Source of the DNA: Hypanus sabinus
Taxonomy: Eukaryota
Length of the DNA stretch: 64,000 nucleotides
Reading direction: 5' to 3'
Assembly (NCBI RefSeq): GCF_030144855.1
Contig: NC_082712.1
Span: forward strand, 9,672,001-9,736,000
Under the pieces are notes generated by a model, which saw only the letters and a list, made by a program, of their open reading frames with translations, was not told the DNA's origin and did not search any database. Position 1 is the first letter of the stretch. Each line of letters opens with the position of its first letter. This document shows positions 23,426-58,736 of the stretch, one piece after another. The position numbers and the translations under genes are program-made.

Positions 23426-23487
23426 TTAATCATTATTCAGGTCCAAAGACTGTTCAGTAGAATGGACAACTGTTGCATAAATTGCAG
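23426..23487 (-). CDS. Siglec-15-like receptor terminal coding exon (x)AIYATVVHSTEQSLDLNND*
   Basis: Acceptor ttgtttctctttcag, phase-1 entry, IYATV tyrosine motif, TAA stop. Confidence 0.75.
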
Positions 23488-23514
23488 CTGAAAGAGAAAC
23501 AATTCTGTTTTAAA

Positions 23515-24070
23515 ACCACAAGACTATAAGACATAGGAGCAGAATCAGGCCATTTGCCCCTCAAGTCTGCTCCGCCATTCCATCATGGCTGATTTTTTAA
23601 CCCTCTCAACCCTATCTTCCTGCCTTCTTGATTGACTTCCTCACTAATCAAGTACTATTAACCTCTGCTTTAAATGACTTGACTGCCACAGCCATCTGGG
23701 GCAATGAATTCCACAGATTCACTACCCTCTGGCTAAAAGAAATTCCTCCTCATCTCTATTCTAAAGTGATGTCTTTGTATTCTGAGGCTGTGCCCTCTGG
23801 TCCTAGACTCTCCCAATATTGGAAGCATCCTCTCCACGTCTGCTCTATCTCAGCCTTTCAGTATTCCATAGGTTTCAATAAGATCCTTCCCTCCAGTGAG
23901 TACAGGCCCAGAGCCATCAAACACTCCTCATGCATTAACCCTTTCATTCCTGGGATCATTCTAGTGAACCTCCGCTGGGCCCTTTTCGATGTCGGCACGT
24001 CCTTTCTTAGAAAAGGGGCCCAAAACTGCTCGCAATACCTCAAGTGTGGTCTGACCAAAGCTCCAGAATT
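23515..24070 (-). mobile_element. CR1 3' fragment
   Basis: RPHLRYCEQFWAP...MIPGMKGL. Confidence 0.85.
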
Positions 24071-25019
24071 ACACTCATTTTAGGATTTTAATGTACTTGT
24101 TGAGAGACGCTGCTGCAGGTCTCCTCGGTTTATGGTAGGATTCCGTTCCTGAGAACTACTCATAACCTGATCAGTTTACAAGTAGAAAGTGTGGCAGCTC
24201 AGCAAAATACTTAAGTAAAGATCTAGCCCAGCCTGGGGCAATGTATAGTTACACAAGGGTGTTGAACATCAGCCATGTGTTGATTGCTGCAAACTGAGTA
24301 GACATATTGCACGATATGGCTGTGGTCCTTTGCTATCTCTTATCTGATGATGTGGTCCTCCGAGTAAATTTGAGCTTCAAGCCCAGACTCCGTGCTTTAG
24401 AAATAGCTTCTTACTTTCCACCAACAGATTACTGAATAGTTCCATTAACACTATCTTGTCATTCATCTTTTGCGCTCTTTGCTTTTGTAACATTGCACTG
24501 TACAACCCGAAAGTCTTACTCTTCACAAACATCCATGAAACAGAACAAACCAAAGAATGAATAACAGAAATATCAGAACCCCAAAGCCCCCCTCCCTCTT
24601 CCATTGCACAAGCAGCAACTGAGGTATCAACCTTCCCTCTGCCCCTCGCCCCACTTGCACCAGCAAAAAAAGTTCAACCATCCCTCCTCCCACCATGCAA
24701 ACAATAGCAAAAGCCCTCAAAAAGACCTTGACCTAGAGTGCATCAAAAACTACAGTCCTATCCCATATTCCCATTGTTTTTGATACCAGCGGCACACAGG
24801 TCCCTGCAAGTTTTTTCCCTTGTCATTGTTTTTTTGACATTTTTCACTAGATTACTCTCATATTTTCCTTCCTTTTACCGATCCCTTTGTTGAATTCCAA
24901 AGTGTGCTTAGCATGGGCGGCTTCTCTGATTGGTATGAAATCCTGCCAAATGGGAACATGAACTCTCAGGGGGTATCTGCTGGTGGTTTACCACTCACTA
25001 CGTGTTTTAATTTCCTTAC

Positions 25020-25091
25020 CTGTCTCTGTGTGCCTGGGTGTTGGAAGTTGGACATTATCGTAAAGACTGTGACATGGAGAGTCGTGGGGAT
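25020..25091 (-). CDS. Cytoplasmic exon DPHDSPCHSLYDNVQLPTPRHTET (canonical ITIM SLYDNV)
   Basis: 72 nt, phase 1-1, acceptor tttgtatattttgcag, donor GTAAGG. Confidence 0.8.
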
Positions 25092-25194
25092 CTGCAAAAT
25101 ATACAAATAGTTAAAATTCATCCTTACCTCCTCCCCACTGCATTCCTTCCTTAAAGCCACCCTCACTCTACCTCTAATGAATGCCTTCAGTTAC

Positions 25195-25217
25195 CTTGGA
25201 GTGTGGAGGGAGGTGAC
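25195..25217 (-). CDS. Candidate 23-nt microexon (G)SPPSTLQ
   Basis: Acceptor ttttattagctcctagcag, donor GTAACT; phase 2 to 1; complements the 73-nt exon at 28203..28275 (sum 96 nt). Confidence 0.35.
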
Positions 25218-28202
25218 CTGCTAGGAGCTAATAAAACAAAGATGAAGGCTGTCTGCAGGCAGGTGTGATCAGTTGAAGCTGGCATCATGGTCAGCACAGG
25301 CACCATTGAGCTGAAGGCCTTGTTCCTGTGGTGTGCTGTTCTATGCTCTATAGAAGTGAGGCCGTAACGCTGAGACTTTATAAGGCATCGGGCAAACTAT
25401 ACTTGGAGTATAGTATTGTGAGCCGTTTCGAGCTTCGTATCTAAGAAAGGATGTGCCGGCATAGGAGAAGATGATTCCGGGAATGAAAGGGTTAATGTTT
25501 GAGAAGCATTTGATGACTCTGGGCCTGTACTCACTGAGTGAGGAGGGAATCTCATTGAAACATATTAATTATTGAAAAGCCTAGTTAGAATGGTGGGTGG
25601 TGGGGCAGAGATGCGTCTCTACCAAAGGAGGTATAAGGTGTTCCTTCCCTCCGCTGGCCTGCAGGTCACCCTTGGGCAAGGTGTAGCACCTGCTTAGCCC
25701 CCTGATCAGGGGCGCCTGAAGCCATGGGAGCAGGTGGTGGATGGTTGTATGAGCAGCTGGTGCAGATCACAAGTCCTGGTTATGTGACCACTGACACCAG
25801 GCAGTCAATCTCTGAAGAGTATTGATAATGGCTGGGCTCACCCGTCTTGTAAAGGCACTGCTCAGAAAAAGCCATTGGCAAACCACTTCTGCAGAAAAAT
25901 TTGCCAAGAGCAATCACGGTGAAATATCATGATCGCCTACATAATGATGATGAGATAGAGTGGATGTGGAGAGGCTGTTTCCAGTAGTGGGAGATTCTAG
26001 GTTCAGTCTGTGTTGAATATCAGCTGACAGATATAACAGGTTCAAAGGGCAAAGTGGACTAGTCACTCTTATATTTCCTCTGTTATAATGTTCTCCCTTA
26101 CATCAGAAGTCTGCTCTGAAAGAGCCTTTGCCCCCCACTCTGAAAGCCCCTTCTGTCTGTCGTCTCACACTTCTTTCCCCAGCCCTGATAGGTCCCATTA
26201 CACCTGCTTTGTCAGTCCACTCTCCCCCCCATGCCTATTCCTCTCAGATTGGCAGCTCTCACCTGACCTAACAACCCATTTTCCCTGTTCTGCTTACCTC
26301 CTCTTCCTCAGTGTTGCAGTTCCAGCTCTGCTTGCTGGTGGGAGGAAGGTCAAATCCACCAAGACCTTTGGCCTCCACGTCCTGACCTTGTAGCAGCTTC
26401 ACTGGCTTTAACCTGTCTCACGTACTCAGTCAGCCTTGAACTTTTGAGACCACCGGATTGTGGGGGTTAGTGGGAAGCCCAGTGGGTGTTGTTAGTCTAT
26501 GTGGGGCTGTTCCTGCACAATATGTCAAGGATACACTGTCCAGCCAGCTGAAGAGATGAATTTCCACTAGATACCCACAGTACAGTGGCTATATTTCATT
26601 AGGGGTTTGAGGAGATTTGGTATGTCACCAATGAATGGAAAATCCCACAAAAAGTAGCAGATATGTCCCAGTTCATCACGAGTAAGGCCCTCCCCACCAC
26701 TGAGTATATCTACATGGAGCACTGTCGCATCATGGACCCCCAATACCCAGGTCATGTTCTCTTCATGCTGCCTCCAGGAAGGAGGTAAAGGAGACTCAGG
26801 ACTCACACCAACAGTTATTAACCCTCCACCATCAGGCTCTTGAACCAGAAGGGATAACTTCACTCAACTTAACTTGTCCCATGAATGAAATGTTCCCACA
26901 ACCTCATGTTCTCGATATTGACTGCTTATTTATTTATCAATATATTTATTTCTTTTTGTGTTTACCCAGTTTGTTGTCCTGCACACTGATTGACAGCCCG
27001 GGTTGGTTTATCATTCTGTTAGGGGTTTATTGAGTATGCCTGCAAGAAAACAAATCTCAGGGTTGTATATGGTGACATATGTGGACTTTGGTAATAAATT
27101 TACTTTGAACTTTTGACTTTTAGCAAATTTCTACAGAAGCACCATGGAGAGTATCAGTGTCTGGTATGGAGGCACTGCAGTGCACTCAATGATTTAGAAG
27201 CAGCTTCTTTCTCCCATCTGATTTCTGAACAGTCCATGAACACTACATCACTATTTTGCCTTTTTTTTGCCCAACTTATTTATTTTTTATATTTCTTATT
27301 GTAACTTCTTTATGACTGCACTGCTGCCACAAAACAACACATTTTTTTGACAATGAAAATAAACCTGATTTTGACAATGGTGTTTCTCTGCTCCCACTGT
27401 TTGATGCGCCTTACCTTTCTGCTGCCCTGCTTCGGAATGTTTTTGAATCTGCACGATGCTGTAAACAGGCTGATGGGGATCCTTCCGGGGATCTGGAAAG
27501 GACACAGAGCTGCTGAACTTTCTCATCCTCTCACTACACAAATCCCTCAACCCTAGATCTAGCCTGTTACTCCCATGCCCTGAAGCCTCATGTCTCCTGC
27601 CATGTAACGGAATGTGTCCTGTCGCACAATGCCATGCATTTCTGGAAGGCAAGTTCAATGTTAGCATTCATTTTGAGAGGATTAGAATATAAAAACAAGA
27701 ATGTAATTCTGAGGCTTTATAAGGCATTGGTTAGGCCACACTTGGAGTATGCTGACCAATTTTGGATGTTGATAGGTTCTTGACTGGTAAGAGAATCAAA
27801 GATTACAGGAAAAAGGCAAGAGAATGGAGCTGAGGGGGGTAATAAATCAGCCATGATGGAATAGTGCAGCAGACTCAGTGGGCTGAATGTCCAAATTCTG
27901 ATCCCATATCTTATGGTCGTATGGGAAGCCCTCTTAAATCCTGTCCTGTCAACCCCACCGTCCCCCTCTAATACCCTGTACTTCTGACGCTTCAAACCTT
28001 CCCAAAGACTCTGATTCTCACCAGCAATTGTTGTGACAGTCTGTTTCTTTCTGATAACCCCTATTGCCTGCTGACAGGCTCCCCACCTCTTTCGATAGCA
28101 GTCTGACACCAACGTCCGCTCCCCCCATCGGCAGTCCAGACAGCTCATCCCCTCTGATTGCCCCCATCCCCTGCCTCTATCTATGACAGGCACTGCTCTC
28201 AC

Positions 28203-28275: not shown

Positions 28276-28376
28276 CTGTGGATACAATGAAGAACGAGCT
28301 GATGGAAAAGTCATGGAGGCAAGGATCCTCAGAAGGCCAATGCCTTACCGCCTACCGTATGTTCACCATTACTTAC

Positions 28377-28448
28377 CCATCTTTGTCTGGCCTTCTGTTT
28401 GAAAGTTAACATTGCTGTAGAGATGCTGGTTTAGAGACTCCTGAGGAT
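28377..28448 (-). CDS. Cytoplasmic exon DPQESLNQHLYSNVNFQTEGQTKM
   Basis: 72 nt, phase 1-1, acceptor gccatttctag, donor GTAAGT; homologous to exon 25020..25091. Confidence 0.75.
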
Positions 28449-31292: not shown

Positions 31293-31382
31293 CATTCTGT
31301 CCCGGAATGGAAGCCACTTGGGGAATAGTCTCTGCTGTTGAATTGACGATACTGTAAATAGGGTCACTTTCAAGTTGCAAAT
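31293..31382 (-). CDS. Cytoplasmic exon DLQLESDPIYSIVNSTAETIPQVASIPGQN
   Basis: 90 nt, phase 1-1, acceptor tctttgtgcctttgacag, donor GTGAGT; IYSIV motif. Confidence 0.8.
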
Positions 31383-32624: not shown

Positions 32625-32696
32625 CTGGCTCTGCAGTTCCTGATTTCACACCACTCACTACACTGGAATCAACACAGTATCCACGCTGACGGGAAC
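32625..32696 (-). CDS. Cytoplasmic exon GSRQRGYCVDSSVVSGVKSGTAEP
   Basis: 72 nt, phase 1-1, acceptor ttttcacctctatgtctttgccag, donor GTAATG. Confidence 0.65.
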
Positions 32697-34382: not shown

Positions 34383-34635
34383 NNNNNNNNNNNNNNNNNN
34401 NNNNNNNNNNNNNNNNNNNNNNNNNNNNNNNNNNNNNNNNNNNNNNNNNNNNNNNNNNNNNNNNNNNNNNNNNNNNNNNNNNNNNNNNNNNNNNNNNNNN
34501 NNNNNNNNNNNNNNNNNNNNNNNNNNNNNNNNNNNNNNNNNNNNNNNNNNNNNNNNNNNNNNNNNNNNNNNNNNNNNNNNNNNNNNNNNNNNNNNNNNNN
34601 NNNNNNNNNNNNNNNNNNNNNNNNNNNNNNNNNNN
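34383..34635. other. Assembly gap (N run)
   Basis: 253 N. Confidence 1.
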
Positions 34636-34987: not shown

Positions 34988-35347
34988 CTTTCTTCAGAGA
35001 CCAGACAACAAAAACAACCAAAGAAACAATTGCTAAAGAGGGCAATACAATGAAGAGGGCCAGCATCAAAGCACTTGTTCCCGTCTTGGCTAGGTGGATC
35101 TCGCGGGTGTCTCTCCTATGCTTATTCATAGCCACACAGCAGTAGCTCCCTCTCAGCCCGGGCAGAACCAGCTTTCCTACACTCTCCAGATCTCCGGTGA
35201 CTCTCATCTCGCTGCTGTTCATGGGCAGTGTGCTGTTCTCGAGGTCAATCCACGTGATGTTTGCAGGGGGCTTCCCTTCAGCCCTGCACACGAGGGTGGC
35301 TCCAGTATCATCAGTCACAAGAGATAGACTCAGGATGATGGCCGGGA
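34988..35347 (-). CDS. Siglec-15-like Ig C2-set + transmembrane exon
   Basis: 360 nt, phase 1-1; VPAIILSLSLV...LVCRAEGKPPANITW...GSYCCVAMN resembles Siglec-15 APRIVNISV...LCTAEGEPPPALAW...GRYTCTAAN; TM SALMLALFIVLPSLAIVSLVVFVVWSL then KK; donor GTGAGT. Confidence 0.9.
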
Positions 35348-37590
35348 CTTGGAGGAGGAAAGAAAATCAAATTAAGTTCATTGAATCTTTACAATTTTTA
35401 TTTTAGAGAACAGCATCATCATTATGTGATGTCGCAGGATCTGGGCGATCATGGTCTCATGATCATGACTGATCACAAATTTTTCTACAGAAATGCCTTC
35501 TTCTGGGCAGTGTCTTTACAAGATGGGTAACCCCAGGCATTATCAATACTCTTCAGAGATTGCCTGCCTGGTGTCATTGTTTGCATAACCAGGGCTTGTG
35601 ATCTGCCCCAGCCGTTTGTACTGTCACGAATCCTGTGACAAGTTGAAAAGGACCAGCAGAAATGGAATACACCTGGAGTCTGGTTTACTTTAAATTAAGA
35701 CTATATTTATTACTATTACGAATTAACATCATTAAAATTGGATAATACGATACAGTTTATAAACTATTTTATATATTGTTTTATATATATATATCCGCAG
35801 AAATGTGTGTGGATGTAATAGTCTTGGAGGTAGATATCAGAGATATCAGTCTTATGGTGTCAGGTAAGTTTAAGCAGTTCAGTTCACTATGTGTTGTGTC
35901 GAGTTGAATTGATGGAGAGAGAGAGAGTTAATTGAGTTGATGTTTACATTGGCAGATTTAGTTGTTCTTGCTTCCGGAGTCTTTAGAGTCATTTTGTGTG
36001 AACCCCGCACAGACACGGACGGACAGAGCCCCTTCTAGGGAACGGTCTACTAACCCACGGCACGGGTTCACCACCAGCAGATCCCCACAGGCAAGCTCTT
36101 ACCTGCACTGGTAATCACGGGTTAAAATTAATCGGTCCATGGCCTCCACCCTCGTGGTGGTCTTAAACTCCACCAGTGGTTTCTCGGGTAGCTTCCGCAC
36201 TTCTCCCGTGTCCTGTCTCCTCTGCCGTTATCAGACCAACGCCTCAACTTTTCATATTCCATCCGGATTTCTAACTGTCTGTTAGCTAAACCGCTCTGAG
36301 CTGTTACCATGGTGACTTCCCAGCTCGTGTCTCAGCTGGCGCCATACTCTCTCTCTCAAGGTCACAATTAAAAGTGTTATCAAAACTATGTCAGAGTCCT
36401 CTCTCTCTTTTAATTGCCTCCTGGTTCATTAAACTGCTGAATTTTCTAGCAGTTTCTCACCTGCGTGACATCTTCCCCCTTTTGGGAAAAATTTGATCTT
36501 TGAGCAAAATTTTGTTCACTCACAGATTCTACACACTAAGCACTACATTCTACTTCACAAAGTGTACCTTTAGAATTTACACAGTTCATCAGCATTTTTT
36601 TAAACAGCGGGATAGGCAATCTGCAATGACATTGTCCGTACCCCTTAAGTGTCTTATCTCTATATCAAACTGCTGTAAACACAGGCTCCAGTTTAATAAA
36701 CGTCAATTTCGACCTTTAATCTTATCTAAAAACACCAAAGGGTTGTGGTCAATGTACACCATTAATAGCTTTTGTACAGCACTGATGTAAACCTCGAAAT
36801 GTTGTAATGCAAAAATGAGGGACTGCAAGTCTTTTTCTATTGTCGAGTAATTTTTCTGGTGCACATTAAACTTTTTGGAAAAGTATGCCACCGGATGTTC
36901 AATACCATCATCTCCCCTCTGTAACAGCACCACCCCTGCAGCTTCATCGCTAGTGTCCGTCACTAAGGAGAACGGATTAGTGAAGTCCGGTGCCTTTAGC
37001 ACTGGATGGTGACACAAGATACCCTTTAACCATCTGAACGCCTTTTGGCAACTCTCATCCCACACAAATTGTTCACTCTTTCTCAACGGTTTTGTCAGTG
37101 GAAGGGCAATATCTGCCAAGTTCTTGCAAAATTTTCGATAATACCCCACCAGACCTAAAAACCTTCTCAAAACCGTTGGAATGGGTACATCAGCGATAGC
37201 CTGAACTTTCCCTTTCACAGGAACCAGTTGACCCTGGCCCACCACCTAACCCTGGCGTGACCAAACTCATTCTTGCCAAGGTTCACCATCAGATTAGCTT
37301 TAGAGAGCCGGTCAAATAATTTCTCTACTGTTACAATGTGTTCCTCCCATGTGTCGTTCCATACTACTAAACCGTCAATTTATGCCTCAGTATTCTTCAA
37401 GCCTTGAATCACAGAGTTTATTTTATGTCCCAGGGGCATTTTTCATCCTGAAAGGCATCACATTATACTTGTACAACCCTGAGGGGGTGACGAATGCCGA
37501 TATCTCTCGTGCCCTATCAGTTAAGGGAACACACCAGTACCCTTTTAGCAGGTCAATTCTTGTTAGGTACTTAGCCTTTCCCACCCTATC

Positions 37591-38990
37591 ATATAACCAT
37601 ATAACCATAATTACAGCACAGAAACTGGCCATCTCAGCCCTTCTAGTCCGTGCCGAATGCTTACTGTCACCTAGTCCCACTGACCCACACTCAGCCCATA
37701 ACCCTCCATTCCTTTCCTGCCCATATACCTATCCAATTTTACTTTAAATGACAATACTGAACCTGCCTCTACCACTTCTATTGGAAGCTCATTCCACACA
37801 ACTACTACTCTCTGAGTAAAGCAATCCCCCCTCATGTTACCCTTAAACTTTTGCCCGCTAACTCTCAACGCATGTCCTCTTGTTTGAATCTCCCCTACTC
37901 TCAATGGAAAAAGCCTATCCACGTCAACTCTATCTATCCCCCTCATAATTTTAAATACCTCTATCAAGTCCCCCCTCAACCTTCTATGCTCTAAAGAATA
38001 AAGACCTAACTTGTTCAACCTTTCCATGTAACTTAGGTGCTGAAACCCACGTAACATTCTAATAAATCTTCTCTGTACTCTCTCTATTTTGTTGACATCT
38101 TTCCTATAATTCGGTGACCAGAACTATACACAATATTCCAAATTCGGCCTTACCAATGTCTTGTACAATTTTAACATTGCATCCCAACTCCTATACTCAA
38201 TGCTCTGATTTATAAAGGTCAACATACCAAAAGCTTTCTTCACCACCCTATCCACATGAGATTCCACCTTCAGGGAACTATGCACCATTATTCCTAGATC
38301 ACTCTGTTCTACTGCATTCTTTAATACCCTACCATTTGCCATATATGTCCTATTTGGATTATTCCTACCAAAATGTAGCACCTCACACTTATCAGCATTA
38401 AACTCCATCTACCATCGTTCAGCCTAGTCTGCTAACTGGCCTAAATCTCTCTGCAAGCTTTGAAAACCTACTTCATTATCCACAATACCACCTATCTTAG
38501 TATCATCTTCATACTTACTAATCCAATTTACCACCCCATCATCCAGATCATTAATGTATATGACAAACAACGTTGGACCCAGTACAGATCTCTGAGGCAC
38601 ACCACTAGTCACCGGCCTCCAACCTGATAAACAATTATCCACCACTACTCTCTGGAATCTCCCATCCAGCCACTGTTGAATCCATTTTACTACTGCAATA
38701 TTAATACCTAATGATTGAACCTTCCTAACTAACCTTCCATGTAGAACCTTGTCAAAGGCCTTACTGAAGTCCATATAGACAACATCCATTGCTTTATCCT
38801 CATTAACATTGCTTGTAATCTCTTCAAAAAATTCAATTAGATTTGTCAAACATGACCTTCCACGCACAAATCCATGTTGACTGTTCCTAATCAGACCCTG
38901 TCTATCCAGATAATTATATATACCATCTCTAAGAATGCTTTCCATTAATTTACCCACCACTGACATCAAACTGACAGGCCTATAATTTCT
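37591..38990 (-). mobile_element. CR1 3' fragment nested in the Gypsy pol
   Basis: ORFs 38424..38969, 38124..38408 and 37671..38057 are CR1 RT; (atatggtt)n tail. Confidence 0.9.
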
Positions 38991-40582
38991 ATTCTGTTCC
39001 CTTGCCGATACCTTCCAGAATATTCACTTGGTCCATTTTTGTCTCGTCACCAAATTCTAAGACATCACTTAATATCAGTGACTGAAAGGCTCCAGTATCG
39101 CACCAGATTCTCACTGGAACTGGGGGTGACCCCTCCTTCAGAGACACAAAACCCTTGATAATAAACCACTCAATCTCTTCCTGAACTTGGCCAGACCCCA
39201 CCTTCCTTCGTGTGGTCTCAGCCGCTGGCGCACATACATCGGGGGTTTTCCCCTTTTCCCATTTCTTTCTTCCGAATAGGACAGTTGGATGCCACATGGC
39301 CAGGCAACCTGCAGTAGTAACAGGTAAAACTGGAAAACTTATCTTTGGTTGGTTTCCCCTCCTTTTTACCTCTGTCACTGGCTCCTGCCTTGTTTCCTGT
39401 GTTACTTGGCAGATTATCCAGGTATTTCTTCTGATAACCCTTGCTCGGGAAAAAATTAATCTTGTGAGTCAGGGCAAACTCATCCACTAACCTAGTGGCC
39501 GTGTAAAGAGTCTCAACCTCTTTCTCTTCTAAGTATGACCATATCTCACTAGGGACACACTCTTTTAATTCCTCGATCAGCATCAGCTGTCTACTTTGTG
39601 GTAGTCCTCGTCTACCTCTTTCGAGGCACACCACCGATCAAAGTACCTCTCCTTTTCACAGGCAAACTCTACATATGTCTGGTTCCTGGACTTCCTCAAA
39701 CCCTGAAACTTCTGTTGGTATGCTTCTGGCACCATTTCATAGACCTTAAGCACAGCCTCCTTCACAGCATCATAATTAGTCGACTCAGTCACAGACAAGG
39801 CAGAATATGCTTGCTGCACCTTCCCTTTTAACACACTTTGCAGCAATACTGCCCAGTCCTCCCTCGACCACTTCTTGTTCTGAGCAACTTTCTCAAAATG
39901 TAGGAAGTACCTATCAACGTCTCCTTTAGCAAACAGAGGTACCAACTTAATTTCCTGACTGACATTAATGGATACACCCCTCTCGCCACTCTCGGCCTGA
40001 CACTTCACCCTCTTGACGACGCATCTCCCTCTCAAACTCCCTCTGTTTTTCTCCCTCTGCAGCCTCCAACTTAAGTCTCTCCATTCTTAATTGTTCTGGT
40101 CGTAACAGGGTCTCCTCATCACCTACTGGAAACTCCTGTAGCGACTCCTCCTCAAGTAACTCTTTCCCAACACAATATTCAGCTACTTTCCTCCGAATTC
40201 CTGCCTTTGTCATACTCCTCTGTATTCCAGTAAGTTTCCATTTGTTAGCAATGTCACATAGAACCTCCTTTCGGGCTCTCCTCAAAAACAGAGGAATAGG
40301 GTTCTCTATAAATTCAATATCCTCCATTTCTGCTGTTTTCCACACACAGCTTAATTACAAGGGATTTCCCCAATTAAGACAAGCCCCCACAATTTCAAAA
40401 ATTGGCTCCGATCAAATTTGTTCAGAACCCGGACGCAGACCCCAATTTTGTCACGAATCCCAAGACAAGTTGAAAAGGACCAGCAGAAATGGAACACACG
40501 TGGAGTTTGGTTTACTTTAAATTAAGACTATATTTATTACTACTATGAAATAATATCATTAAAACTGGATAATACGATACAG

Positions 40583-45119: not shown

Positions 45120-46410
45120 AAGCCAGGCCTGTACTCACTGGAGTTCAGAACAATAAGGGGTGATCTCACTGAAACCTATCAAATATTGAAAGGCAGAGAT
45201 AGAGTGAATGGGGAGAGGATGTTTCCTGTGGTGGGGAGTCAAGGACCAGAGGGGACTGACTCAGAATAGAGGCACATCCATTTAGATTGGAAATGATGAG
45301 TGTCTTTAGCCAGAGAGTGGTGAATCTGTGGAATTCATTAGCACAGACTGCTGTGGAGGCCAAGTCATTGGGTACATTTAGACCAGAGGAACAAAAAAGA
45401 CTGGAGCAGAATGAGGCCATTCAGCCCATTGAGTCTGCATTGCAAATTCATCATGGCTGATCCATTTGCCTTCTCAACCCCATTCTCCTGCCTTCTCCCT
45501 GTAACCTTTCATGCACTGACTAATCAAAAATCTATGAAATTCTGCCTTATGACAGAATAACTAAATGACCTAGCCTGCACATCCATTCTGTTCCCGCAAC
45601 ACTACTTGCCCCTCCACCTATCTTGATATCATCTGCAAACTTGGCCACAAACCGATCAATTCTATCTTCCAAATCATTGACATATAAAATGAAAAGAAGC
45701 AGTCCCAAAACTGACTCCTTTGGATCAACACTAGACACCGACAACCAATTTGAAATGTCTCCCTTTACTCACACTTCATTGCCTCCTGCCAATCAGCCAA
45801 TCCTCTATCCCTGCTAATATCTTTCTTGTAATACCATAGGGTCTTATCTTGTTAAGCAGTTTCATGTGCGGCATCTTGTCAAAATCCAAGTGGGCAACAA
45901 CCTCTGATTCTCCTTTGTCGACCTTGCTTCTTAGTTCCTCAAAAAATTCCTACAGATTTGTAAGGCAGGATTTCCTTTCGGTCAACCATGCAGACTGTGG
46001 CCTATTTTATCATGTGCTTCCACGTACCCTGAGACCTCATCCTTAACAATCAACTCCAACATCTTCCCAACTACTGAGGTCAGACTAACTGGTCTATAAT
46101 TTTCTTTATTCGGCTTCTCTCCCTTTTTGAAGAGTGGAGTGGCTTTGTAACTTCAGACACTCTCGAACTTCCACTGTACTGTTGGTGTCTTCCACAATGA
46201 AGATGGATGCAAAATACTCATTCAGACTCTACACCATGTCCCTGTTCCCCATTGCTATTATATAAGGTGGAGGTTGATAGGTTCTTGATTGGTCAGGCTC
46301 TCAAAGGTTATGGAAGAAGGCATGAGAATGGGGTTGAGAGGGATAATAGATTAGCCATTATGGAGTGGTGAAGCAGAGTCGATGGGCTGAATTCCCTAAT
46401 TCTGTTCCTG
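45120..46410. mobile_element. Mixed CR1 fragments on both strands
   Basis: VAKFADDIKIGG and CR1 3' ends; boundaries approximate. Confidence 0.7.
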
Positions 46411-46613
46411 TGTCTTATCCAGGGAGGGAATCTGCACCATATCCTTACCACTGGTGGTGGTACTGAGTGGGGGGGGAACGCTGGACTGAGAATGGAACCC
46501 ACGAGGGATCGAGCCAATCTCAGTCCCAGTTCCTCAGTGGGGGCTCATTTCTTCCTACGGATGTTCAATACATTTTTATCAATTACACAACACTGATGGA
46601 GCTGTTTCCTTAC

Positions 46614-46970
46614 CCATGACCTGCAGTCCAGTCTCATCCAGAGTCTCTGCCTCCCATGTGGAATTCCTGACCCAAACATGACAGAAATATCTGCTGGTGT
46701 CTTTCAGTCTGAGGTCCGTCACCCTGATGGAGGCATTTCCTTGCCCTGGATCTCCCACCAGCTCATATTGGCCTCCTTCACTTACGGTGTTGGTGTAGGG
46801 AGAACTGGCAGAGTGGAAATGAGTTTGACATAAGACAGTGGATACATTTGGAGGATTCCCCTTCATCCAGAGGATAGTGATGGAGTTGGGTTTTGTGTCA
46901 GGAGGTGTGAAGTAGCAGGACAGTGTGTCAGAATTTCGCCTTTTTACACTGTTATGAGTGCTGAACAGAC
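46614..46970 (-). CDS. Ig V-set exon V3 (first 21 nt LTR-derived)
   Basis: 357 nt, phase 1-1; TLSCYF...ILWMKG...YELVGDPGQGNASIRVTDLRLKDTSRYFCHVW; acceptor ccccatttccatcag, donor GTAAGG. Confidence 0.8.
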
Positions 46971-47566
46971 CTGATGGAAATGGGGTGCAGAGTTTACCAT
47001 TCTCCCCCTTTGAGAACAATGAACTATTGCAATTGCTATGCTGCTAATGAGAGAGAGAGAGATAAAGCACAGAGGCAGGGTCACCTGCTACAGATAAGAG
47101 CGAGAGAGACACACACTTGATTTATGTATTATGACTTCTTCACTGATTGTTTACCTTTCGCTACGTTACTTTACTCGTTAACATTACTGAGGAGACAGCA
47201 GGAGTGGCCTACTTTGATGGACATGGTCATTTTGAGTTGATGGATGGCTGATACCCTGTCAGTGGGGATAAAAGACAGGTGTGGGGAGACACCCTCAGGC
47301 ACAACAGTGGACACTGAATGAGTGTTGTACACCCACAGGAAGGTGGGGGCTTCAAGGACCGAATCAGGAGATCGGTCAACAAAGCTCACAGTGTGACAGC
47401 AGGGCCGGTGGGGGCTTGTGTGTGTCCACTCATGCCAGAGTGACGAGTCCACCATGGAAGAACAGTCTAGCTGAGAACGGAGAGGTCCTAACCGAATGAC
47501 CACAACGGTACGACGGAATAAGAAGACAACAGAAGGTTTGTCTGGTGCAGCTGTTACATCTCGCTT

Positions 47567-47618
<52 letters not shown>

Positions 47619-47912
47619 AAATTACAATACAACAACTGCAACTACTTCAGCACACATGAACTGAACTAGACTCTATATTCTCTTATGACAATTCATTTAC
47701 CCCTAGATATTGATAGAGCTTGTTTCTTATTATTGATTATTATTCTACACTTCTAGGTTTATTGTTGCTAACCTGTTTTATCTGTATATTTGCATTTTTG
47801 ATATTGTATTGCTTAGTTTACTAATAAACACCTTTAGTTTTTGGTACCACCAGACTCCAACGGATTCTTCTATTTCTGCCGGTCTGTAAACCCAGTTACG
47901 GGGTATGTAACA
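46950..47912 (+). mobile_element. Solo LTR (963 bp) inserted in the 5' end of exon V3
   Basis: TGTTA...TAACA termini; internal (TC)n and AATAAA near 47823; flanks rejoin into sequence collinear with exon V2; degenerate 4-bp TSD acac/gcaa. Confidence 0.8.
47569..47613. repeat. (TC)n microsatellite inside the solo LTR
   Basis: Perfect dinucleotide run. Confidence 0.95.
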
Positions 47913-47943
47913 GCAATCACCGATGATACTCTGACACCTTGGA
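47913..47943 (-). pseudogene. Orphaned original 5' end of exon V3 with acceptor mutated AG to TG
   Basis: Collinear with the V2 acceptor region, 23 nt to gtgattg in both; encodes VQGVRVSSVI. Confidence 0.75.
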
Positions 47944-49380
47944 CATTTTAAAGTAAGGACAATCTGGATTAGTTGAGTGTATTAATCACATTTTATTCAA
48001 CAATATTTCATCCCCATCTATGAGTTTAATTCTGCATCTCATTCCTACTCCGACTCTGATGACTGCAGTGATGACTGATTTCATGTCTGTGGACTGACTT
48101 TGGTGACCTTCAGTTCCGAATATTATTGCTGACTTCTATTGCTTGCACAATTTGTTTTTTTTTCTGCACATTGCAGGTTTGATTGTCTTTTTTTTTATTG
48201 GGTTCTGTTGGGTTTCTCTGTAAGGAGACAAATCTACAAATGTACTTTGAACTTTGTGTCTCCAAAGACTTTTGTGTTCTGTCTACATGCAGGAAACAGC
48301 ACCAATGCAGTTTTAAATATATCAGTAAAGCGGCTGAGGGACGGGTTCTCTGCGTCGGAGTGAAACAAGAAATGTTCCAGATATCCCACAGACGGACAGT
48401 CACACCGTTTGGACAATGATTCATCACTTCCCTCTGTCACAGATGTTAGCGGACACACAGACAGACAGACATACTTTATTGATCCCAAGGGAAATTGGGT
48501 TTCACCAAAACCATCGCCAGAACCAGCGGTGGAGGACAATGTCCCCAGAGGACCCCCATCAACATCCAACATTTTGTACCTTTGTCATTGCTGTTCCCCT
48601 CTGCAGATCCACCAGAAAGTGAAAGCAATCATAAGAAGGTAGACTACGTAAGTGGCAGCTCGAATGGCCAATGCAGTCAATCTCAGCTTGGGTAGGAAGA
48701 CCTGACACGTGTCTCTCATGTGTTGATTCAGAGCCACTCTGCGTAGCTTCCACCCAGGCTGGAGTGAAGTATCTCTCCCGTAGTCTGAGATCTTGTGTGG
48801 CTCTCCTCTCTGCTGCTTATGGGCCGTGAGTTGTTCCCAGCGTCGATCCACATGATGTTTGCAGGAGGTTCCCATTGACAGAGCACAGAGAGGTCCCTCC
48901 AGTTACAGTATCAGTCACAAGGGCCAACTCCAGGGTGGTGACTGTGACTTGGGGAGTGTTATTCTCAAGTGCATTGGAACAAAGTCCCTCAGCTCTAGGA
49001 AAGGTGAGGAATGGGAGAGAACCAGCAGGGGAATGGAGTGAAAATGTCATTGTGGAAACTGACTGGTGATTGTCTGTAGAAGCTTCTGGGTCTTTAATGC
49101 TGGACACAGATGTAAATATCTCAGGCCAGGCTGGTCATTCAGCAGCCAAATGAGAGTCTGAACCTCTGACCCTGCAGCAGGAAGCTCCACCTATCCTGGG
49201 TTGGAATCCACTGAGGGCAGTACTGAGTGAGGGGGTTGGGGAGCCCAGGAGCAGAAATGGAGACCACAAGGGTTTGAGCTAGTCTCGGCCCCAGCTCCTC
49301 ACTGGGAGCTCATTTGTTCTTACAGAAGTTATCAATATGTTTTTATTGTTTCCACAGCACCAATAGAGATATTTACTTAC

Positions 49381-49746
49381 CCTCTATCTGCAGAGTCATC
49401 TCATTCTGGATCACTGTCGTTTTGTTTCCCTTGCCCTTGAACCAAATATGACAGAAATATCTGCTGGTGTCATTCAGTGTGAGGTCCGTCACCCTGATGG
49501 AGGCGTTTCCCTGCTCTGGATCTCCCACCAGCTCATATCGGCCTCCTTCATTTACAGTGTTGTTGTAGGGTGGGCTGGTGGAGGAGGAACGAGTCTGATT
49601 GAAGACAATGGATACATCTGGAAGATTCCCCTTCATCCAGACGATACTGATGGAACGGGGTTTCCTGACAGGAAATGTGGAGTAGCAGGGAAGTGTAGCA
49701 GAATCTCCCCTCTTTACAATCACTGACGGTTCGCTGGCATTTTCGA
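49381..49746 (-). CDS. Ig V-set exon V2
   Basis: 366 nt, phase 1-1; GDSATLPCY...IVWMKG...GRYELVGDPEQGNASIRVTDLTLNDTSRYFCHIW; acceptor gtctttactctgaacag, donor GTAAGT. Confidence 0.9.
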
Positions 49747-51149
49747 CTGTTCAGAGTAAAGACAATCTGGATTTGTTAAGTGTATTAAACACATTTTGAT
49801 GAACAACATCTCATCCCTGTCGATGACCTGAATTCTCCATCTCCTTCCTTCTCTGACCCATCTGTCCCTGACCTCCTGCACTGTTCTATCGAAGCCCATT
49901 ATAATCTCGGGAAACAGCACCTCCCCCATGTGTGGACAAGATGGAGTGGTCGTGAATACAACCATCTCAGCTAATTTTTTCTCTTGGTTTCTATCAACAC
50001 TGGCCACTCCTGCTCTATTGGTTCAGTCGTACACTGCCTGTTCTACTGGGTAACTCGTGGAGCTCTGGGTGGCATCTTGCAGCTCCAACATCTGCCACTT
50101 TTTGTGCTCTCCCTCCAGCTTTCTCCCTTCATTCACCAACCAGAGATCTCATCAAAAACCTTCTCACCATGGCCACGCTGTACTCACCCTCACAGACATA
50201 TTCCCTCTGTCCTATCCAATCCTCTCCAGGATGGGAAAATAGGGAGCAAAGAAACTCCTTGCTCCAAAGGGAAGGATGAGGGGCATTAGAGGCAAGGAAA
50301 CTCCTTGTTCTGCCCAGGAGGAGAGGGAGTGAGGAAAGAGAGCCGTTGTACAGCTGAATAGTACTACATCCTGACTTGCCAATGGCCTTTGAGTGTTATG
50401 GACAAACAATATAACTTGTCTGTAAATATTCAATTTTTTAAAAACCAGTCATTCTGTATACATCGTGAATATCTGTTTTGGACTGACTGGAGTAGCACCA
50501 CAATCTCGTCGTCTTTGAGCAACAATACAGTTCTATTGTATTCTATTCTGGAATAGCACACACAAAATCCAAGGGAACTCAGCAGGTCAGGCTGCATCTA
50601 TTGAAAAAAAAATAAATGGTCAAGGTTTTGAGCCAAGATCCTTCATCAGGACTAGAAAGGAGGGAGGAAGTATGCAGAATAAGAAGGCGGGTTTGGGAAG
50701 GAGTAAAGTCAGCTGGAGATAGATGAGACCAGATGGAAGGGTAAATTAGGATGGTGAGAAGCTGGGAGGAGGCAGATGTAAAAGGTAAAGGGCTGAAAAT
50801 GGAATATAATAGGAGAGGAGACTGCACCATGGGAGACAGGGAAGAATGAGGGGCAGAATGCATTACCTCATGCTTATCAAATTCTTCAGTCACTGCTCTA
50901 CTAAATCTTCCAACTCATCTGTGTTCCTTCCACGGTATCCCTCTCTACATACTGCTCCACTAGCTAAGTATTATCAGTAAATTTCTTGATCAGTAACTTC
51001 CCTCAGCCATTTCACTCTGTCTCCTACAAAGCGAAGTTTGGATCCAGTTTGCCACACACAATGGCGTAGCGGTAAGTGTAACGCTGTTAATGCCAGAGCC
51101 CTGGGTTCAGTTCCACCGCTGTCTGTGAGGAGTTTGTATGTTAAGACAA

Positions 51150-53530
51150 TACGTCCATAAGATATAAGAGCAGAAGTAGGCCATTCGGCCCTTCAAGTCT
51201 GCTCTACCATTCAATCATGGGTTGATCCAATTCTTCCAGTCATTCCCACTCGCCTGCCTCCTCCCCATACCCTTTTTGATGCCCTGGCTAATCAAGAACC
51301 TATCTAGCTCTGCCTTAAATGCACCCAATGACTTGGCCTCCACAGTCACTTGTGGCAATAAATTCCACAGATTTACCACTCTCTAACTAAAGTAATTTCT
51401 CAGCATCTTTGCTCTAAATGGTTGTCGTTCAATCCTGAAGTCATGCCCTCTTGGCCTGGACTCCCCTACCATGGGAAATAACTTTGCCATATCTAATCTG
51501 CTCTGGCCTTTTAACATTCGGAATGTTTCTGTGAGATCCCCCCTCATTCTCCTGAACTCCATGGAATACAGCCCAAGAGCTGCCAGACGTTCCTCATATG
51601 TTAACCCTTGCATTCGTGGTATAATTCTCATGAATCTTCTCTAAACCCTCTCCAATGTCAGTATATCCTTTATAAAATAAGAGCGCAAAACTGTACACAA
51701 TTCTCCAAGTGTGGTCTCAGGAGGGCCTTATAGAGCCTCAACATCATATCTCTGCTCTTATATTCTATAACTCCAGGAATGAATGCCAACATTGCATTCG
51801 CCTTCTTCACCTCCAACTCAACCTGGAAGTTAACTTTTAGAGTATCCTGCCCAAGGACTCCCAAGTCACTTTGCATCTCTGCACTTTGAATTTTCTCCCC
51901 ATCTAAATAATAGTCTGCCCGTTTATTTCTTCCACCAAAGTGCATGACCACACACTTTCCAACATTGTATTTCATTTGCCATTTCTTTGTCCATTTCCCA
52001 AACTACCTCAGTCTCTCTGCAGGCTCTCTGTTTCCTCGGCAGTACCTGCTCCTCCACCTATCTTTGTATCATTGGCAGTTTAGCCATAAATCCGTTATTA
52101 CTGTAGTCCAAACAATTGACATTCCTACACTGACCCTTGTGAAGCCCCGCAGGTAACTGGCAGCCTAGCAGAATAAGATCCCTTTATTCCCACTCCCTGT
52201 TTTCTGCCGATCAGCCACTGCTCCACCCATGCTAGTGACTCCCCTGTAATTCCATGGGATCTTATCTTGCTAAGCAGCCTCATGTGTGGCACCTTGTCAA
52301 AGGCCTTCTGAAAATCCAAGTACACCACACCTACTGCATCTCATTTGTCTACCCTGCTTGTAATTTCCTCTAAAACTTGCAGTAGTTTAATCAGACAGGA
52401 TTTTCCTTTCAGAAAACTTTGGCCTATCTTGTCATGTGCCTCCAGGTACTCTGTAATCTCATCCCTAACAATCAGTTCCAACAACTTCCCAACCACTGAT
52501 GCCAGGATAACAGGTCTATAGTTTCCTTTCTGCTGTCTCCCACCCTTCTTAAATAACAGAGTAACATTTGCAATTTCCCAGTCATCTGGTACAATGCCAG
52601 AATCTATCGATTCTTGCAAGATCATTGTTAATGCCTCTGCAATCTCTCCAGCTACTTCCTTCAGAGCCCAAGGATACATTCCATCAGGTCAAGAGATTTA
52701 TTCACCCTCAGACCATTAAGCTTCCTGAGCACCTTCTCAGTCATAATTTTCACTGCACAAACTTCACTTCCCTGACACTTTTGAATGTCCGGTATACTGC
52801 AGATGTCTTCCACTGTGAAGACTGATGTTAAATATGCATTCAGTTCCTCTACCATCGCTGCATCTTTCATTACGATATCTCCAGTGTCATTTTCTATTGA
52901 TCCTATATCTAGCCTCGACTCTCTTTTACCCTTTATATACTTAAAAAGCTTTAGTATTCTCTTTGATATTAGTCACTAGCTTCCTCTAATAATTCATCTT
53001 TTCCTTTCGAATGACCTTCTTAGTTTCTTTCTGCAAGTTTTCATAAGCTTCTCAATCCTCTATCTTCCCACTGGCTTTGGCGTCTTTTGCTTTTACTTTG
53101 GGTCTGACTTTACTTGTCAGCCATGGTAATGTCCTTCTTCCATTCAAAAATTTCTCCTTATTTGGAATTTACCTGTCTGGCACTTCCCTCATTTTTCACA
53201 GAAACTCCAGCCTTTGCTGCTCTGCTGTCCTTCCTGCTAGGGTCCCTTTCCAATCAACCTTGGCCAGTTCCCCTGTCAAGCCACTGTAATTTCCTTTATT
53301 CCACCGAAATACTGACATGTTGAAATTTAGTTTCTCCTTCTCAAAATTCAAAATGAACTCGATCATATTGTGATTGCTGTTCCCTAAGGGTTTCTTAACC
53401 TTAAGCTCCGGATCAGTGCACAACAGCTAATCCAGCATAGCCGATCCCCTAATGGGCTCACCAACAAGCTGTTCTAAAAAGTCATTCCCTTAGACATTCA
53501 ACAAAATCTCTCTCTTCAGGTCCAGTACTG
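51150..53530 (-). mobile_element. CR1 ORF2 long fragment
   Basis: Successive RT ORF pieces 53196..53423, 52341..52679, 52125..52328, 51670..51975, 51383..51631. Confidence 0.9.
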
Positions 53531-55455: not shown

Positions 55456-55680
55456 ACCAGTGGTTCCCAACCTTTTTTTGGCCATGCCCCACCTAATCAC
55501 CTCTAAAATCCTGATGCCCCCTGTGGTGATATATAATTCTTATTATTCAAAAAGTGAACTCCTATTCACCTAGAGGAAGTCTAAAAGACCATTAACTTGG
55601 TTTAAACAAGCTTCCAAAGAACATGACATTCATGAAAGAGAAAAATAAAAGAACCAAAGGACTGTTAAAGTTCTGACGAA
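55455..55680 (+). mobile_element. hAT-like MITE end (CAGTGGTTCCCAAC)
   Basis: Charlie-type TIR start; similar ends near 30705 and 28905..28990. Confidence 0.45.
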
Positions 55681-57560
55681 GAGGGTAAGAATAGGATGCT
55701 CTGGAGAATGAACAGGTGGCTGAGAAACTGGTGTAGGGGGCAGGGTTTCAAATTTCTAGATCATTCGGACCTATTCTGGGGCAGGTGGGACCTGTACAAG
55801 AGAGACAGGTTACTCCTGAACTACAGGAGGACCAATATCCTTGCAGGGAGATTTGTTAGTTCTATTGGGGGTGTGGTTTAAACTAGATTTGCAGGGGGAT
55901 GGGAACAGAGTGCCAGAGTACATAGTGGAGCTGGGGTGAAAATAAATGATGTTACAGTTTGATGTGAAGTCACAAATAGAAGGGTTGTTTGTGGTGGTAA
56001 TAATCTTCTGAGGTGTGAGGTGACATGCAAAAGTTTGGGCACACCTCCAGGTCACACTTCCAGGTCTCAACTTGACCTCCACCGTTCCTGTTAACTGCCA
56101 TTTTTTAATTACATTATGAACTGAGGAAACGGCTACCTGAAAATGCTTTGCTATCTTCTTATAGCCTTGTCCTACTTTGTGGGCATCATTTATTTTAATT
56201 TTCAGAGTGCTACGCAGCTACTTAGAGGAGCCCATGGCTGCTGATTGTTGTGACAAGGTTTGCGGAGTCAGGGTATTTATAAAGCTTTGAAATTTGCATC
56301 ACCTGGCCTTTCTTAATGATGACTGTGACCAAGCCATAGCCCTAACAAGCTAATTAAGGTCCGAGACCTTGGGAAAAGTTATCTGAGAGCTCAGATCTCT
56401 TGGGATGCCCAAACTTTTGCATGGCGCTCCTTTCCTTTTGTTCACTCTAAAATAGTACAAAACAAAAGTAATACATTGATCTTGCTTGAAATGTTGAAAA
56501 GAATGTTTCATCTTAACTTTATGACTTTTGGAGATGAGTTCATCTTCTAAACACTTAAATATTCACTGTAACAGAAATCTTGACGGGGGTGCCCAAACTT
56601 TTGCATGCCACTGTATTATTTCTTATTCCATCCCCTCTGCCTACTAACCTATCTTTCTGATACACCGTATATCCTTGGACGTTCAGCTCCCAAAGGCAGC
56701 CATCCTTTAGTCAAGTTTCAGAGATGGCCACAACATCATATTTGCCAATCTGTAGCTGAATTTCAAGATTGTCCATTTTATTTCTTATGCTGTGTGCATT
56801 CAAATATAACACTTACAGTTCAATATTTGTTGCTTTCTTTTTCAACTGCACCACTCCTCTTTTGCCCTGTAACTGGCTGTGATTATGCCTCATCTGCTGC
56901 TTGTCCTTTCTATCATCTTGTTGCATCTTTGATTTATTTATTTCTGTTTTCCCCTTCCTCAATCTTATCTTTCTGGTTCCCATCCCCCTGCCAAATTAGT
57001 TTAAATCCTCCCAGACAGCTCTATTAAACCTGCCTGCTAGGATATTGGACCCCTTTAGGTTCAGGTGTAACCCGTCCATTTTGTACAGGTCTTACCTCCC
57101 CCAGAAGAGGCCCCAATGATCCAGGAACCCAAAGCCCTGCCTCCTACACTGGTCTCTTAGCCAGCCGTTAATACACTTGATTATGCTATGCTTGTACTCG
57201 TTAGCACGTGGCACAGGCAGCAATCCTGAGATTACGATCCTGGAGGTCCTGCTTTTCAGCTTCCTACCCAACTCCCTGAATTCTCCTTCAGGATCTCCTT
57301 TTCTACCTGTGTCTAGGTGACTAGGTGAGAGTAAGTGTTCGGCAAGGACTAGAAGGGCTGAGGTGGCCTGTTTCCATGCTGTAATTGTTATATGGTTATA
57401 TATTGTATGGTTATGTCATTGGTACCACCCTCTCCCTTCAGAATACTCTGCACCTGATCCGAGACATCCCATACCATGGCACCTGGGAGGCAACACACCA
57501 TGCGGGTATCTCTATAAGGCTGACAGAATCTCCTGCCTGTTCCCTCTCACTATTGAATAC
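55680..57560. mobile_element. CR1 ORF1 esterase fragments (plus 55680..56030; minus about 56900..57560) with a Tc1-like end between
   Basis: NRWLRNWCRGQGFKFLDH; gcccaaacttttgca...cactgta. Confidence 0.65.
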
Positions 57561-58065
57561 CCTGTTCCGAGCGTAACTCTAAATACAATAAATAAGTGAC
57601 ATTTTCTCCTTCCTTATAGAGACATGTTCCAAAGGCTCAGTGTACTCTTCCCCTAACTCTCCACACTCCACATCCTTCTCTCTGGTGGAAACCAATAAGA
57701 AGTATTTATTTACATAAAACCCAGCTCATTCTCGACAGGTTTCCCTTTCAGTCCCTGAAGGAATCTTCTAATTTCTTATCCACTCTCTCACTTCCAATAA
57801 ATGAGTCAATACTTTTGGGATGTCTATTATACTGTTTGCCAACGTATCAAACCTTATTTTACTCCCTATTTCTTTCTGAAGATCTCTTTGGTAGATGTGA
57901 GTGCATTCCAATATGCTATTGTCCTCTGATGTACCCGAGCAGACTCAGGAATGGACAGCAACAACCAGCCCTGCTCGTGACAACCAGATCTCAGGAGGGA
58001 CAGAGGACACATTGCTCTCAGCAATGTGTTTATTTCAACAGATTTCAGATGCAATTGCTCCTCAC

Positions 58066-58446
58066 CTGTTACTTTGATGGTTCTATTAGCATCTGCATAT
58101 TTTTCTTGTGGTTCTTCAGTGAAATATTCTTGACAATTGAATGCTTTCCCGTCCTCTTTCTTCAGTTCTTTGACCATTATTGAAGCGTCATTCTCCCGTG
58201 GGTTCCCCAGAGGCTGGAAGCGATCTCTTTTGTTGTTCTCAATGTGATTTTTAAATTCTTGTCCTGATAGATAATTGGTGTAATTTAAAAGTGTGTCACC
58301 TCCCTTCTTGTACTTCCAGACGATGCTGATGTTCTTATTGTATTCATCGTGAGGGAGAGTGAAAAAACAGAACAGAACCAAGGAATTCCCTTCTCTCCCT
58401 ACCACCACGTCTGGGGTCTCCTTGGTCCATCTATTATTATCAGCAG
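58066..58446 (-). CDS. Siglec-15-like Ig V-set exon V1
   Basis: 381 nt, phase 1-1; RWTKETP...LVLFCFFTLPHDEYNKNISIVW...DRFQPLGNPRENDASIMVKEL resembles Siglec-15 RWSMQVP...VLPCTFTHPHRHYDGPLTAIW...GRFRLLGNPRRNDLSLRVERL; acceptor ctctgtcttcacag, donor GTGAGG. Confidence 0.88.
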
Positions 58447-58659
58447 CTGTGAAGACAGAGGTGTGGTGTTAATGCTGAGCTGAGGCCACAGACACTACAG
58501 GAGTCATGCCCTAAGACCATAAGACCCAGGAGCAGAATTAGACCATTTGTCCCATTGACTCTGCCCCACCATTCCATCATGGGTGAATCGTGTGCCCACC
58601 CTGTGTCTCTGCCCTGTTGAAAGGGGACTGAACTATGACAGTGTTGTGTTGCGTCATAC

Positions 58660-58736
58660 TGAACAGATGGTAAATGCAGAGAAATAAAATGAGAGAGATT
58701 GCGGCACCCAAGGAGGTTCTTCTTGACCGGAGCCAT
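58660..58736 (-). CDS. Candidate leader (signal peptide) exon, 1 nt out of phase
   Basis: accATGg Kozak; hydrophobic LGAAISLILFLCIYHLF lies in the +1 frame ending at phase-1 donor GTATGA, 213 nt above V1. Confidence 0.5.

Follow-up and report, generated by a model that had tools for sequence, protein, structure and literature searches.

Siglec-15 is viewed in the literature as a conserved lectin that has a single V domain and is coupled to DAP12 (PMC7226832, PMC10264397). Within the V domain, the arginine residue R143 binds the carboxylate of sialic acid and is essential (PMC10264397, PMC7226832), and a second disulfide bond (C95-C104) is present (PMC10264397). Paired receptors with similar ectodomains and either a tail carrying an immunoreceptor tyrosine-based inhibitory motif (ITIM) or a charged transmembrane segment have been described for primate Siglecs (Siglec-5/14, Siglec-11/16; PMC4042635, PMC5701461). 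In this report, we describe a gene in a 64-kb stretch of the genome of the stingray Hypanus sabinus (contig NC_082712.1; the whole stretch is termed the window, and all coordinates are relative to its first letter). In all likelihood, this is one real gene of about 35 kb on the minus strand, lengthened by retroelements, which codes for a Siglec-15-like receptor of a long-tail subtype and includes a duplication within its ectodomain region. The gene shares the logic of the primate pairs, which, unlike it, belong to the CD33-related lineage, have only one V domain and use an arginine to bind sialic acid. For the Siglec-15-like family of cartilaginous fish to which it can be assigned, our literature search found no published paper.

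Gene and exon structure

Exons for three V-set domains (V1, V2 and V3), one exon for a C2 domain and the transmembrane segment (C2/transmembrane exon), and six small tail exons (T1 to T6) follow each other on the minus strand, with AG and GT splice sites and all in phase 1. Together with a proposed leader exon, they form eleven exons that join into a single open reading frame (ORF) of 1992 nt encoding 663 aa, which confirms an earlier note on this DNA in which phase-1 symmetric exons with GT-AG sites had been predicted to yield one frame of about 635-670 aa. Pfam assigned V-set domains to V1 (E 5e-8), V2 (1.5e-14) and V3 (3e-11), and an Ig_3/I-set domain to C2. The segments from V1 to the tail are colinear with XP_072113536.1, an uncharacterized RefSeq model of the manta Mobula birostris, except for V3, which aligns with the manta V2. 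The C-terminal 184 residues of the manta protein are colinear with six short minus-strand segments (64-83% identity), and it was by this homology, not by motif, that the tail exons were mapped. The features of the locus are:

58499..58580, minus strand: proposed leader exon, doubtful; ATG at 58580, hydrophobic core, phase-1 GT
58066..58446, minus strand: V1 exon, Siglec-15-type V-set (Pfam, PDB match, profile, AlphaFold and Foldseek, tree)
49381..49746, minus strand: V2 exon, V2-type V-set with CHIWF, without the arginine (Pfam, about 70% identity to manta V2, tree)
48598..48947, minus strand: dead C2/transmembrane pseudo-exon (tblastn and DNA alignment to the live exon)
47914..47943, minus strand: former 5' end of the V3 exon, now orphaned (homology to the region upstream of V2; acceptor CAG changed to ATG)
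46950..47912, minus strand: long terminal repeat (LTR)-like insertion splitting V3 (break in V2/V3 homology; termini TGTTA..TAACA)
46614..46970, minus strand: V3 exon as currently readable, V2-type V-set with CHVWV, without the arginine (Pfam, AlphaFold, tree)
34988..35347, minus strand: C2/I-set and transmembrane exon (Pfam Ig_3/I-set; 79-82% identity to the manta exon)
32625..32696, minus strand: tail exon T1, membrane-proximal (GSRQRGYCVD..); 75% identity to manta, AG/GT phase 1
31293..31382, minus strand: tail exon T2 (PIYSIV); 83% identity to manta, AG/GT phase 1
28377..28448, minus strand: tail exon T3 (HLYSNV), a motif absent from the four of the earlier note; 83% identity to manta, AG/GT phase 1
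27415..27492, minus strand: tail exon T4 (PVYSIV); 81% identity to manta, AG/GT phase 1
25020..25091, minus strand: tail exon T5 (SLYDNV); 64-67% identity to manta, AG/GT phase 1
23426..23487, minus strand: last coding exon T6 (AIYATV) with TAA at 23428-23426; 67% identity to the manta C-terminus, acceptor AG

The AATAAA nearest to T6 is located at 23027. Two assembly gaps, one at 34383-34635 (352 nt 3' of the donor of the C2/transmembrane exon) and one at 40583-40722 (over 5 kb away from V3 as well as from the C2/transmembrane exon), are intronic, and neither is crossed by an exon or reading frame. An additional exon may be concealed within a gap; in the manta protein, V2 continues into C2 and the transmembrane segment into T1 without residues missing at either junction. 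Retroelement debris is dense in the window, most long ORFs being occupied by fragments of reverse transcriptases of long interspersed nuclear elements (LINEs) and of LTR gag-pol. In the intron between V3 and the C2/transmembrane exon, remains of an LTR retrotransposon (36703-40345, minus strand) comprise a zinc-knuckle gag, a protease region and a reverse transcriptase/RNase H fragment, and adjoin the gap at 40583-40722.

Relationship to Siglec-15 and the lectin site

When single sequences were searched against the PDB, human Siglec-15 (7zoz) was the top match for both V1 (4e-10) and V2 (8e-10). Profiles of the two domain types, built solely from cartilaginous-fish sequences, likewise matched Siglec-15 best, the V1-type profile with 8e-20 (followed by CD33 with 2e-11) and the V2-type profile with 9e-15 (followed by TIM-3 with 4e-11). 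The AlphaFold (AF2) model of V1 reached a predicted local distance difference test score (pLDDT) of 76, and its top Foldseek match was 7zoz_A (TM-score 0.70). In the domain tree, V1-type domains and the V domains of Siglec-15 are split from the V2-type domains with a support of 99/97; V1 of the window groups with manta V1 (58-60% identity), and V2 and V3 fall among the V2 types, V2 together with manta V2 (support 98/95 and 99/92). The kinship to Siglec-15 asserted in the earlier note is thus supported at the level of sequence, V1 and V2 having their best PDB matches there and V1 also its closest fold. Of the Siglec-15-like motifs cited in that context, LCxAEGxPP of the C2 domain is generic to I-set domains, and C2 was rejected as specifically Siglec-15-like because its profile matches generic I-set domains (titin, PTPRS, contactin).

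With Siglec-15 of bony vertebrates (7zoz; PMC10264397, PMC7226832), the gene shares the canonical disulfide between strands B and F, the motifs W[ST]M..P..V and FTHP..Y near the N-terminus, the order of V, C2 and transmembrane segment, and a homologous C2/transmembrane exon. The layout of the Siglec family is thereby present (an N-terminal V-set domain, a C2-set domain and one transmembrane segment, with Siglec V domains as the most similar ones), and the F-strand arginine of the N-terminal V-set domain, which is essential for the family, is absent. Siglec-15 combines one V and one C2 domain with R143, C95-C104, a transmembrane lysine for DAP12/DAP10 and a short tail, whereas the window gene has two or three V exons and none of the other features that mark Siglec-15 orthologues, namely the transmembrane lysine, the short tail and the second V disulfide.

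The arginine for sialic acid is missing from all three V domains: where Siglec-15 reads CRVEF, V1 has CQEYF (glutamine), V2 CHIWF (histidine) and V3 CHVWV (histidine). The glutamine is common to manta V1, and the arginine is kept in V1 of skate, numbfish, sevengill shark and chimaera. V1 possesses the B-F cysteine pair and lacks the extra cysteine pair seen in the alignment rows of mammal, bird and lungfish Siglec-15. Since the arginine is replaced in every V domain and the second disulfide is missing in V1, canonical sialic-acid binding by the receptor appears unlikely.

Transmembrane segment and tyrosine tail

In a family alignment (alignment A6), the transmembrane lysine of the manta, whale shark and chimaera forms and of bird, mammal and lungfish Siglec-15 occupies one column, in which the window gene has alanine. 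Its transmembrane segment contains no lysine, as the earlier note had stated. The tail of about 150 aa carries five YxxV motifs (PIYSIV, HLYSNV, PVYSIV, SLYDNV and AIYATV) instead of the four tyrosine motifs counted before, HLYSNV of T3 having been missed. The sequence features by which ITIM receptors are recognized, at least one ITIM and no charged transmembrane residue, are both present: SLYDNV of T5 fits the consensus [SIVL]xYxx[ILV], and it is the only motif that does, the other four lacking the residue at position -2. An inhibitory function of the receptor can thus be inferred. A further tail piece near 23857-23759 (SEYKDI) was rejected as a frameshifted LINE tail. T3, T4 and T5 all start with DP, as if a single cassette had been duplicated.

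Internal duplication and the third V exon

A tblastn search with the C2/transmembrane exon revealed a second match at 48947-48598, between V2 and V3, with 71-77% nucleotide identity to the live exon. In this copy, four deletions totalling 5 bp shift the frame, a further 9 bp are missing from the transmembrane part, and the GT donor is lost; read in phase, it runs into a stop after 43 codons, its homology is spread over all three frames, and of the two Ig cysteines the second is gone. Self-comparison of the window showed that the copy is part of a tandem duplication of about 1.8 kb comprising a V exon, a short intron and a C2/transmembrane exon. The transmembrane-like part of the pseudo-exon reads ..LAIRAATYVV.. 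and contains an arginine, as does the first transmembrane segment of manta XP_072113536 (..WVLARYIVV..); the duplicated segment may once have been of the charged, adaptor-binding type.

The exon order could also be explained by two separate tandem genes, a dead V1-V2-(C2/transmembrane) gene followed by a V3-C2/transmembrane-tail gene, and the succession V1, V2, C2/transmembrane-like, V, C2/transmembrane indeed resembles the manta model, which strings two V1-V2-C2/transmembrane units together. Neither a leader nor a V1 exon was found between 48598 and 46970, however, and a search of the stretch from the pseudo-exon to V3 for any other family exon or a leader-like exon was negative as well; the pseudo-exon is separated from the original V3 acceptor by only about 650 bp, and the duplication spans V and C2/transmembrane exons only. 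The separate-genes reading was rejected on these grounds and is highly improbable; with no leader or V1 between the copies, the structure is therefore taken as an internal duplication within one gene.

Homology between V2 and V3 ends 23 nt into V3; it is taken up again about 965 bp further upstream, at 47914-48054, a segment homologous to 49717-49857 upstream of V2. The interruption is an insertion (47912-46950) whose ends, TGTTA..TAACA, resemble those of an LTR and which includes a (GA)n tract (47614-47569); the window contains no second copy of the insertion. The old acceptor of V3 now reads ATG instead of CAG, and its present acceptor together with the first seven codons is supplied by the insertion. 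Nevertheless, V3 is free of stops and frameshifts and has kept all family-invariant residues while the co-duplicated C2/transmembrane copy decayed. Its branch in the tree is shorter than that of V2, and the AF2 model shows an Ig fold with a pLDDT of 77 (54 over the first 10 residues).

V2 and V3 of the window are 60% identical. In the tree, V3 is sister to the pair of window V2 and manta V2, and an approximately unbiased (AU) test of a clade uniting V2 and V3, a group named after seeing the tree, gave p = 0.039. Tree and test speak, only weakly, against V2 and V3 as a recent duplicate pair confined to the stingray. The duplication of V and C2/transmembrane exons is thus probably older than the split of stingray and manta, and V3 would therefore have been kept open for a long time.

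Evidence against the proposed gene and alternative readings

Several observations weigh against a functional receptor with three V domains and an inhibitory tail. The first concerns the leader. The proposed exon (58580-58499) lies almost entirely within a 75-nt interspersed repeat (58509-58586) that occurs in at least 10 copies in the window and in both orientations, others being located at 11335-11412, 61025-61099, 23520-23592, 16016-16084, 46355-46418, 27847-27924, 51155-51222 and 63607-63673. Only 52 nt separate it from V1, its donor (CCT|GTAGTG) is weak, and it does not resemble ML[CF]IL[LF]CA.., the leader typical of the family. Scans of 58447-64000 (5.5 kb upstream), of the whole window and of the stretch from the pseudo-exon to V3 did not find a leader of the family type. 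The leader exon claimed in the earlier note is therefore doubtful, and the true first exon is probably a different one located further upstream. The repeat, probably a LINE tail or the tail of a short interspersed nuclear element (SINE), is signal-peptide-like in one frame (..EW..R..G.NGL.LLL..) and can imitate leader exons beside Ig exons anywhere in this genome.

Further points concern V3, the tail and the gene as a whole. The V3 acceptor is derived from the LTR-like insertion, and to meet an AG in frame within a few codons upstream would be expected by chance. The ratio of nonsynonymous to synonymous substitution rates (dN/dS) between V2 and V3 is about 0.85-1.05, with 26, 28 and 25 differences at the three codon positions, a pattern compatible with relaxed constraint and with diversifying selection alike. 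Among the five tail motifs, SLYDNV alone is a canonical ITIM, and YSNV (T3) and YDNV (T5) are also of the form YxN, a Grb2-type motif that SH2 domains of this type could bind; hence, the tail may not be purely inhibitory. Finally, a protein database search with region 362-874 of the manta protein returned matches from other species only and none from this genome, and a search with the C2/transmembrane exon gave no match in the length range that it covered.

The evidence on V3 leads to a variant of the same gene in which V3 is a dying, skipped exon and the product has the standard architecture of the family, V1-V2-C2-transmembrane-tail, with about 544 aa including the proposed leader. We regard this as a serious possibility, rated somewhat short of an even chance. 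It would account for the destroyed native acceptor, the replacement of the 5' end by the LTR-like insertion and a V2/V3 dN/dS near 1; skipping of V3 preserves the reading frame, the ortholog-like manta model has only V1 and V2 per unit, and the sevengill shark possesses a two-V isoform alongside a three-V one. Against skipping stand the fully open body of V3 with its invariant residues, kept while the C2/transmembrane copy was lost, the good pyrimidine tract of the replacement acceptor, the strong donor TGG|GTAAGG and the Ig fold of the AF2 model. As judged from these features, V3 is about equally likely to be included in the mRNA or left out. Of the three V domains claimed earlier, three in-frame V-set exons can be confirmed; the 5' end of the third is LTR-derived and its use in mRNA doubtful.

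A more radical alternative is that the whole locus is a non-functional relic, a slowly decaying pseudogene devoid of a real leader. The absence of a family-type leader within 5.5 kb upstream, the repeat origin of the proposed one, the dead exon inside the gene, the disruption of V3 and the loss of the lectin arginine from every V domain could be read in this way. However, open frames and splice sites that match the consensus are retained in ten exons distributed over 35 kb, the tail has 64-83% identity to that of the manta protein, with which the loss of the V1 arginine is also shared, and the leader may simply be located past the end of the window. We consider a relic improbable and retain the interpretation as a single real gene.

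Relatives in cartilaginous fish

An exhaustive HMMER search with V1 yielded 81 relatives, of which those with names are Siglec-15 of birds, mammals and lungfish; the remainder are RefSeq models from rays, skates, sharks and chimaera annotated as 'uncharacterized', 'Siglec-15' or 'Siglec-12'. The norm among cartilaginous fish is a leader, V1, a distinct V2 type, C2 and a transmembrane segment, so that the single V domain assumed as baseline in the earlier note was wrong for this group. Two sets can be distinguished: proteins with a transmembrane lysine and nearly no tail (manta XP_062903801, whale shark, chimaera), and proteins with an uncharged transmembrane segment and a long YxxV tail (manta XP_072113536, sevengill shark XP_067838218, chimaera). 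The window gene belongs to the V1-V2-C2-transmembrane Siglec-15-like family, known from RefSeq predictions only, and there to the long-tail subtype, which is marked by V1-type and V2-type domains, an uncharged C2/transmembrane exon and a tail of cassette exons with the pattern DP..Y..V. Partners with a transmembrane lysine, for which the earlier note had suggested a search, are thus predicted with the same ectodomain in manta, whale shark and chimaera. For the postulated inhibitory arm of a paired family, the tyrosine tail and, by comparison, the lysine-bearing counterparts are in place, and inhibition itself is inferred. Chimaera also has a form with three V1 domains followed by V2, C2 and a transmembrane segment, and lungfish a form with seven V domains.

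The closest relative, manta XP_072113536.1, shares V1, V2, the C2/transmembrane exon and six tail segments in the same order, the glutamine in place of the lectin arginine in V1 and a last transmembrane segment without lysine. It differs in having two V1-V2-C2/transmembrane units and no third V domain, where the window gene combines a single V1 with two V2-type exons and a dead C2/transmembrane copy. The manta model, which starts without a leader, has the appearance of a tandem duplication that arose recently and was read through, as is possible when every exon is of phase 1-1.

Two predicted models are decisive for the question of architecture. Isoform X2 of 'Siglec-12' of the sevengill shark Heptranchias perlo (632 aa) follows the same plan as the window gene (leader-V1-V2-V2-C2-transmembrane-tyrosine tail), isoform X3 (536 aa), likewise only a predicted model, being the two-V version; isoform X3 of LOC129695366 of the little skate (694 aa) consists of V1, three V2-type domains, C2, a transmembrane segment and YxxV motifs. 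In both species V1 keeps the arginine (CRVD, CRVE), in contrast to V1 of the window, and the V2 copies are near-identical recent duplicates, whereas V2 and V3 of the window have diverged. The architecture, regarded as undescribed in the earlier note, is therefore already contained in RefSeq predictions, and the window gene adds one more member to a family predicted by the annotation of shark and ray genomes.

Proposed origin and meaning

The gene would code for a type I membrane receptor that belongs to the Siglec-15-like family of cartilaginous fish, with an uncharged transmembrane segment and a tail assembled from six small phase-1 exons. According to the history that we propose, an old internal tandem duplication would have copied the V2 and C2/transmembrane exons; the upstream C2/transmembrane copy decayed and would have to be skipped in splicing, and the downstream V copy, V3, kept its frame until the LTR-like insertion took the place of its native acceptor and initial codons, leaving the rest of the frame open. 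The mature protein would be either V1-V2-V3-C2-transmembrane-tail or, with V3 skipped, V1-V2-C2-transmembrane-tail, both of which are in frame. Because all V domains lack the Siglec arginine, its ligand would probably be something other than sialic acid bound in the canonical pocket. Phosphorylated tail tyrosines could recruit SH2 phosphatases and thus oppose relatives that have the same ectodomain and a transmembrane lysine of the DAP12 type.

A more far-reaching scenario, which we offer tentatively and consider rather doubtful, is that V3 is spliced via the acceptor donated by the LTR-like insertion and that the product is a three-V, arginine-less, tyrosine-tailed relative of Siglec-15 opposing nearby forms with a transmembrane lysine. 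In that case, Siglec-15 might go back to a paired system of multi-V receptors in early jawed vertebrates, in which it formed one arm, and bony vertebrates would have kept only the activating arm of that system.

Sharks, rays and chimaeras possess an expanded family with an extra V2-type domain and with both lysine-bearing and tyrosine-tailed versions, and the window offers a clean example of the tyrosine-tailed form. The locus also records how such a gene can grow: phase-1 exons are duplicated, a surplus transmembrane exon dies, and a V exon struck by a retroelement is either rescued or lost. This is of use for the annotation of elasmobranch immune genes and leaves the picture gained from database predictions unchanged.

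Additional observations

A neighbouring gene type is represented in Mobula birostris by XP_072113672 and XP_072113673, which have one arginine-bearing V domain, a C2 domain, a transmembrane segment and a tail made up of N-x-T/S-rich repeats of 18 aa; this type with a single V domain is placed, with weak support (84/70), beside the V domains of bony-vertebrate Siglec-15 in the tree. The longest ORF of the window (5597-7420, minus strand) encodes a 607-aa fragment of a LINE ORF2 with endonuclease and reverse transcriptase regions, and the element may be young.

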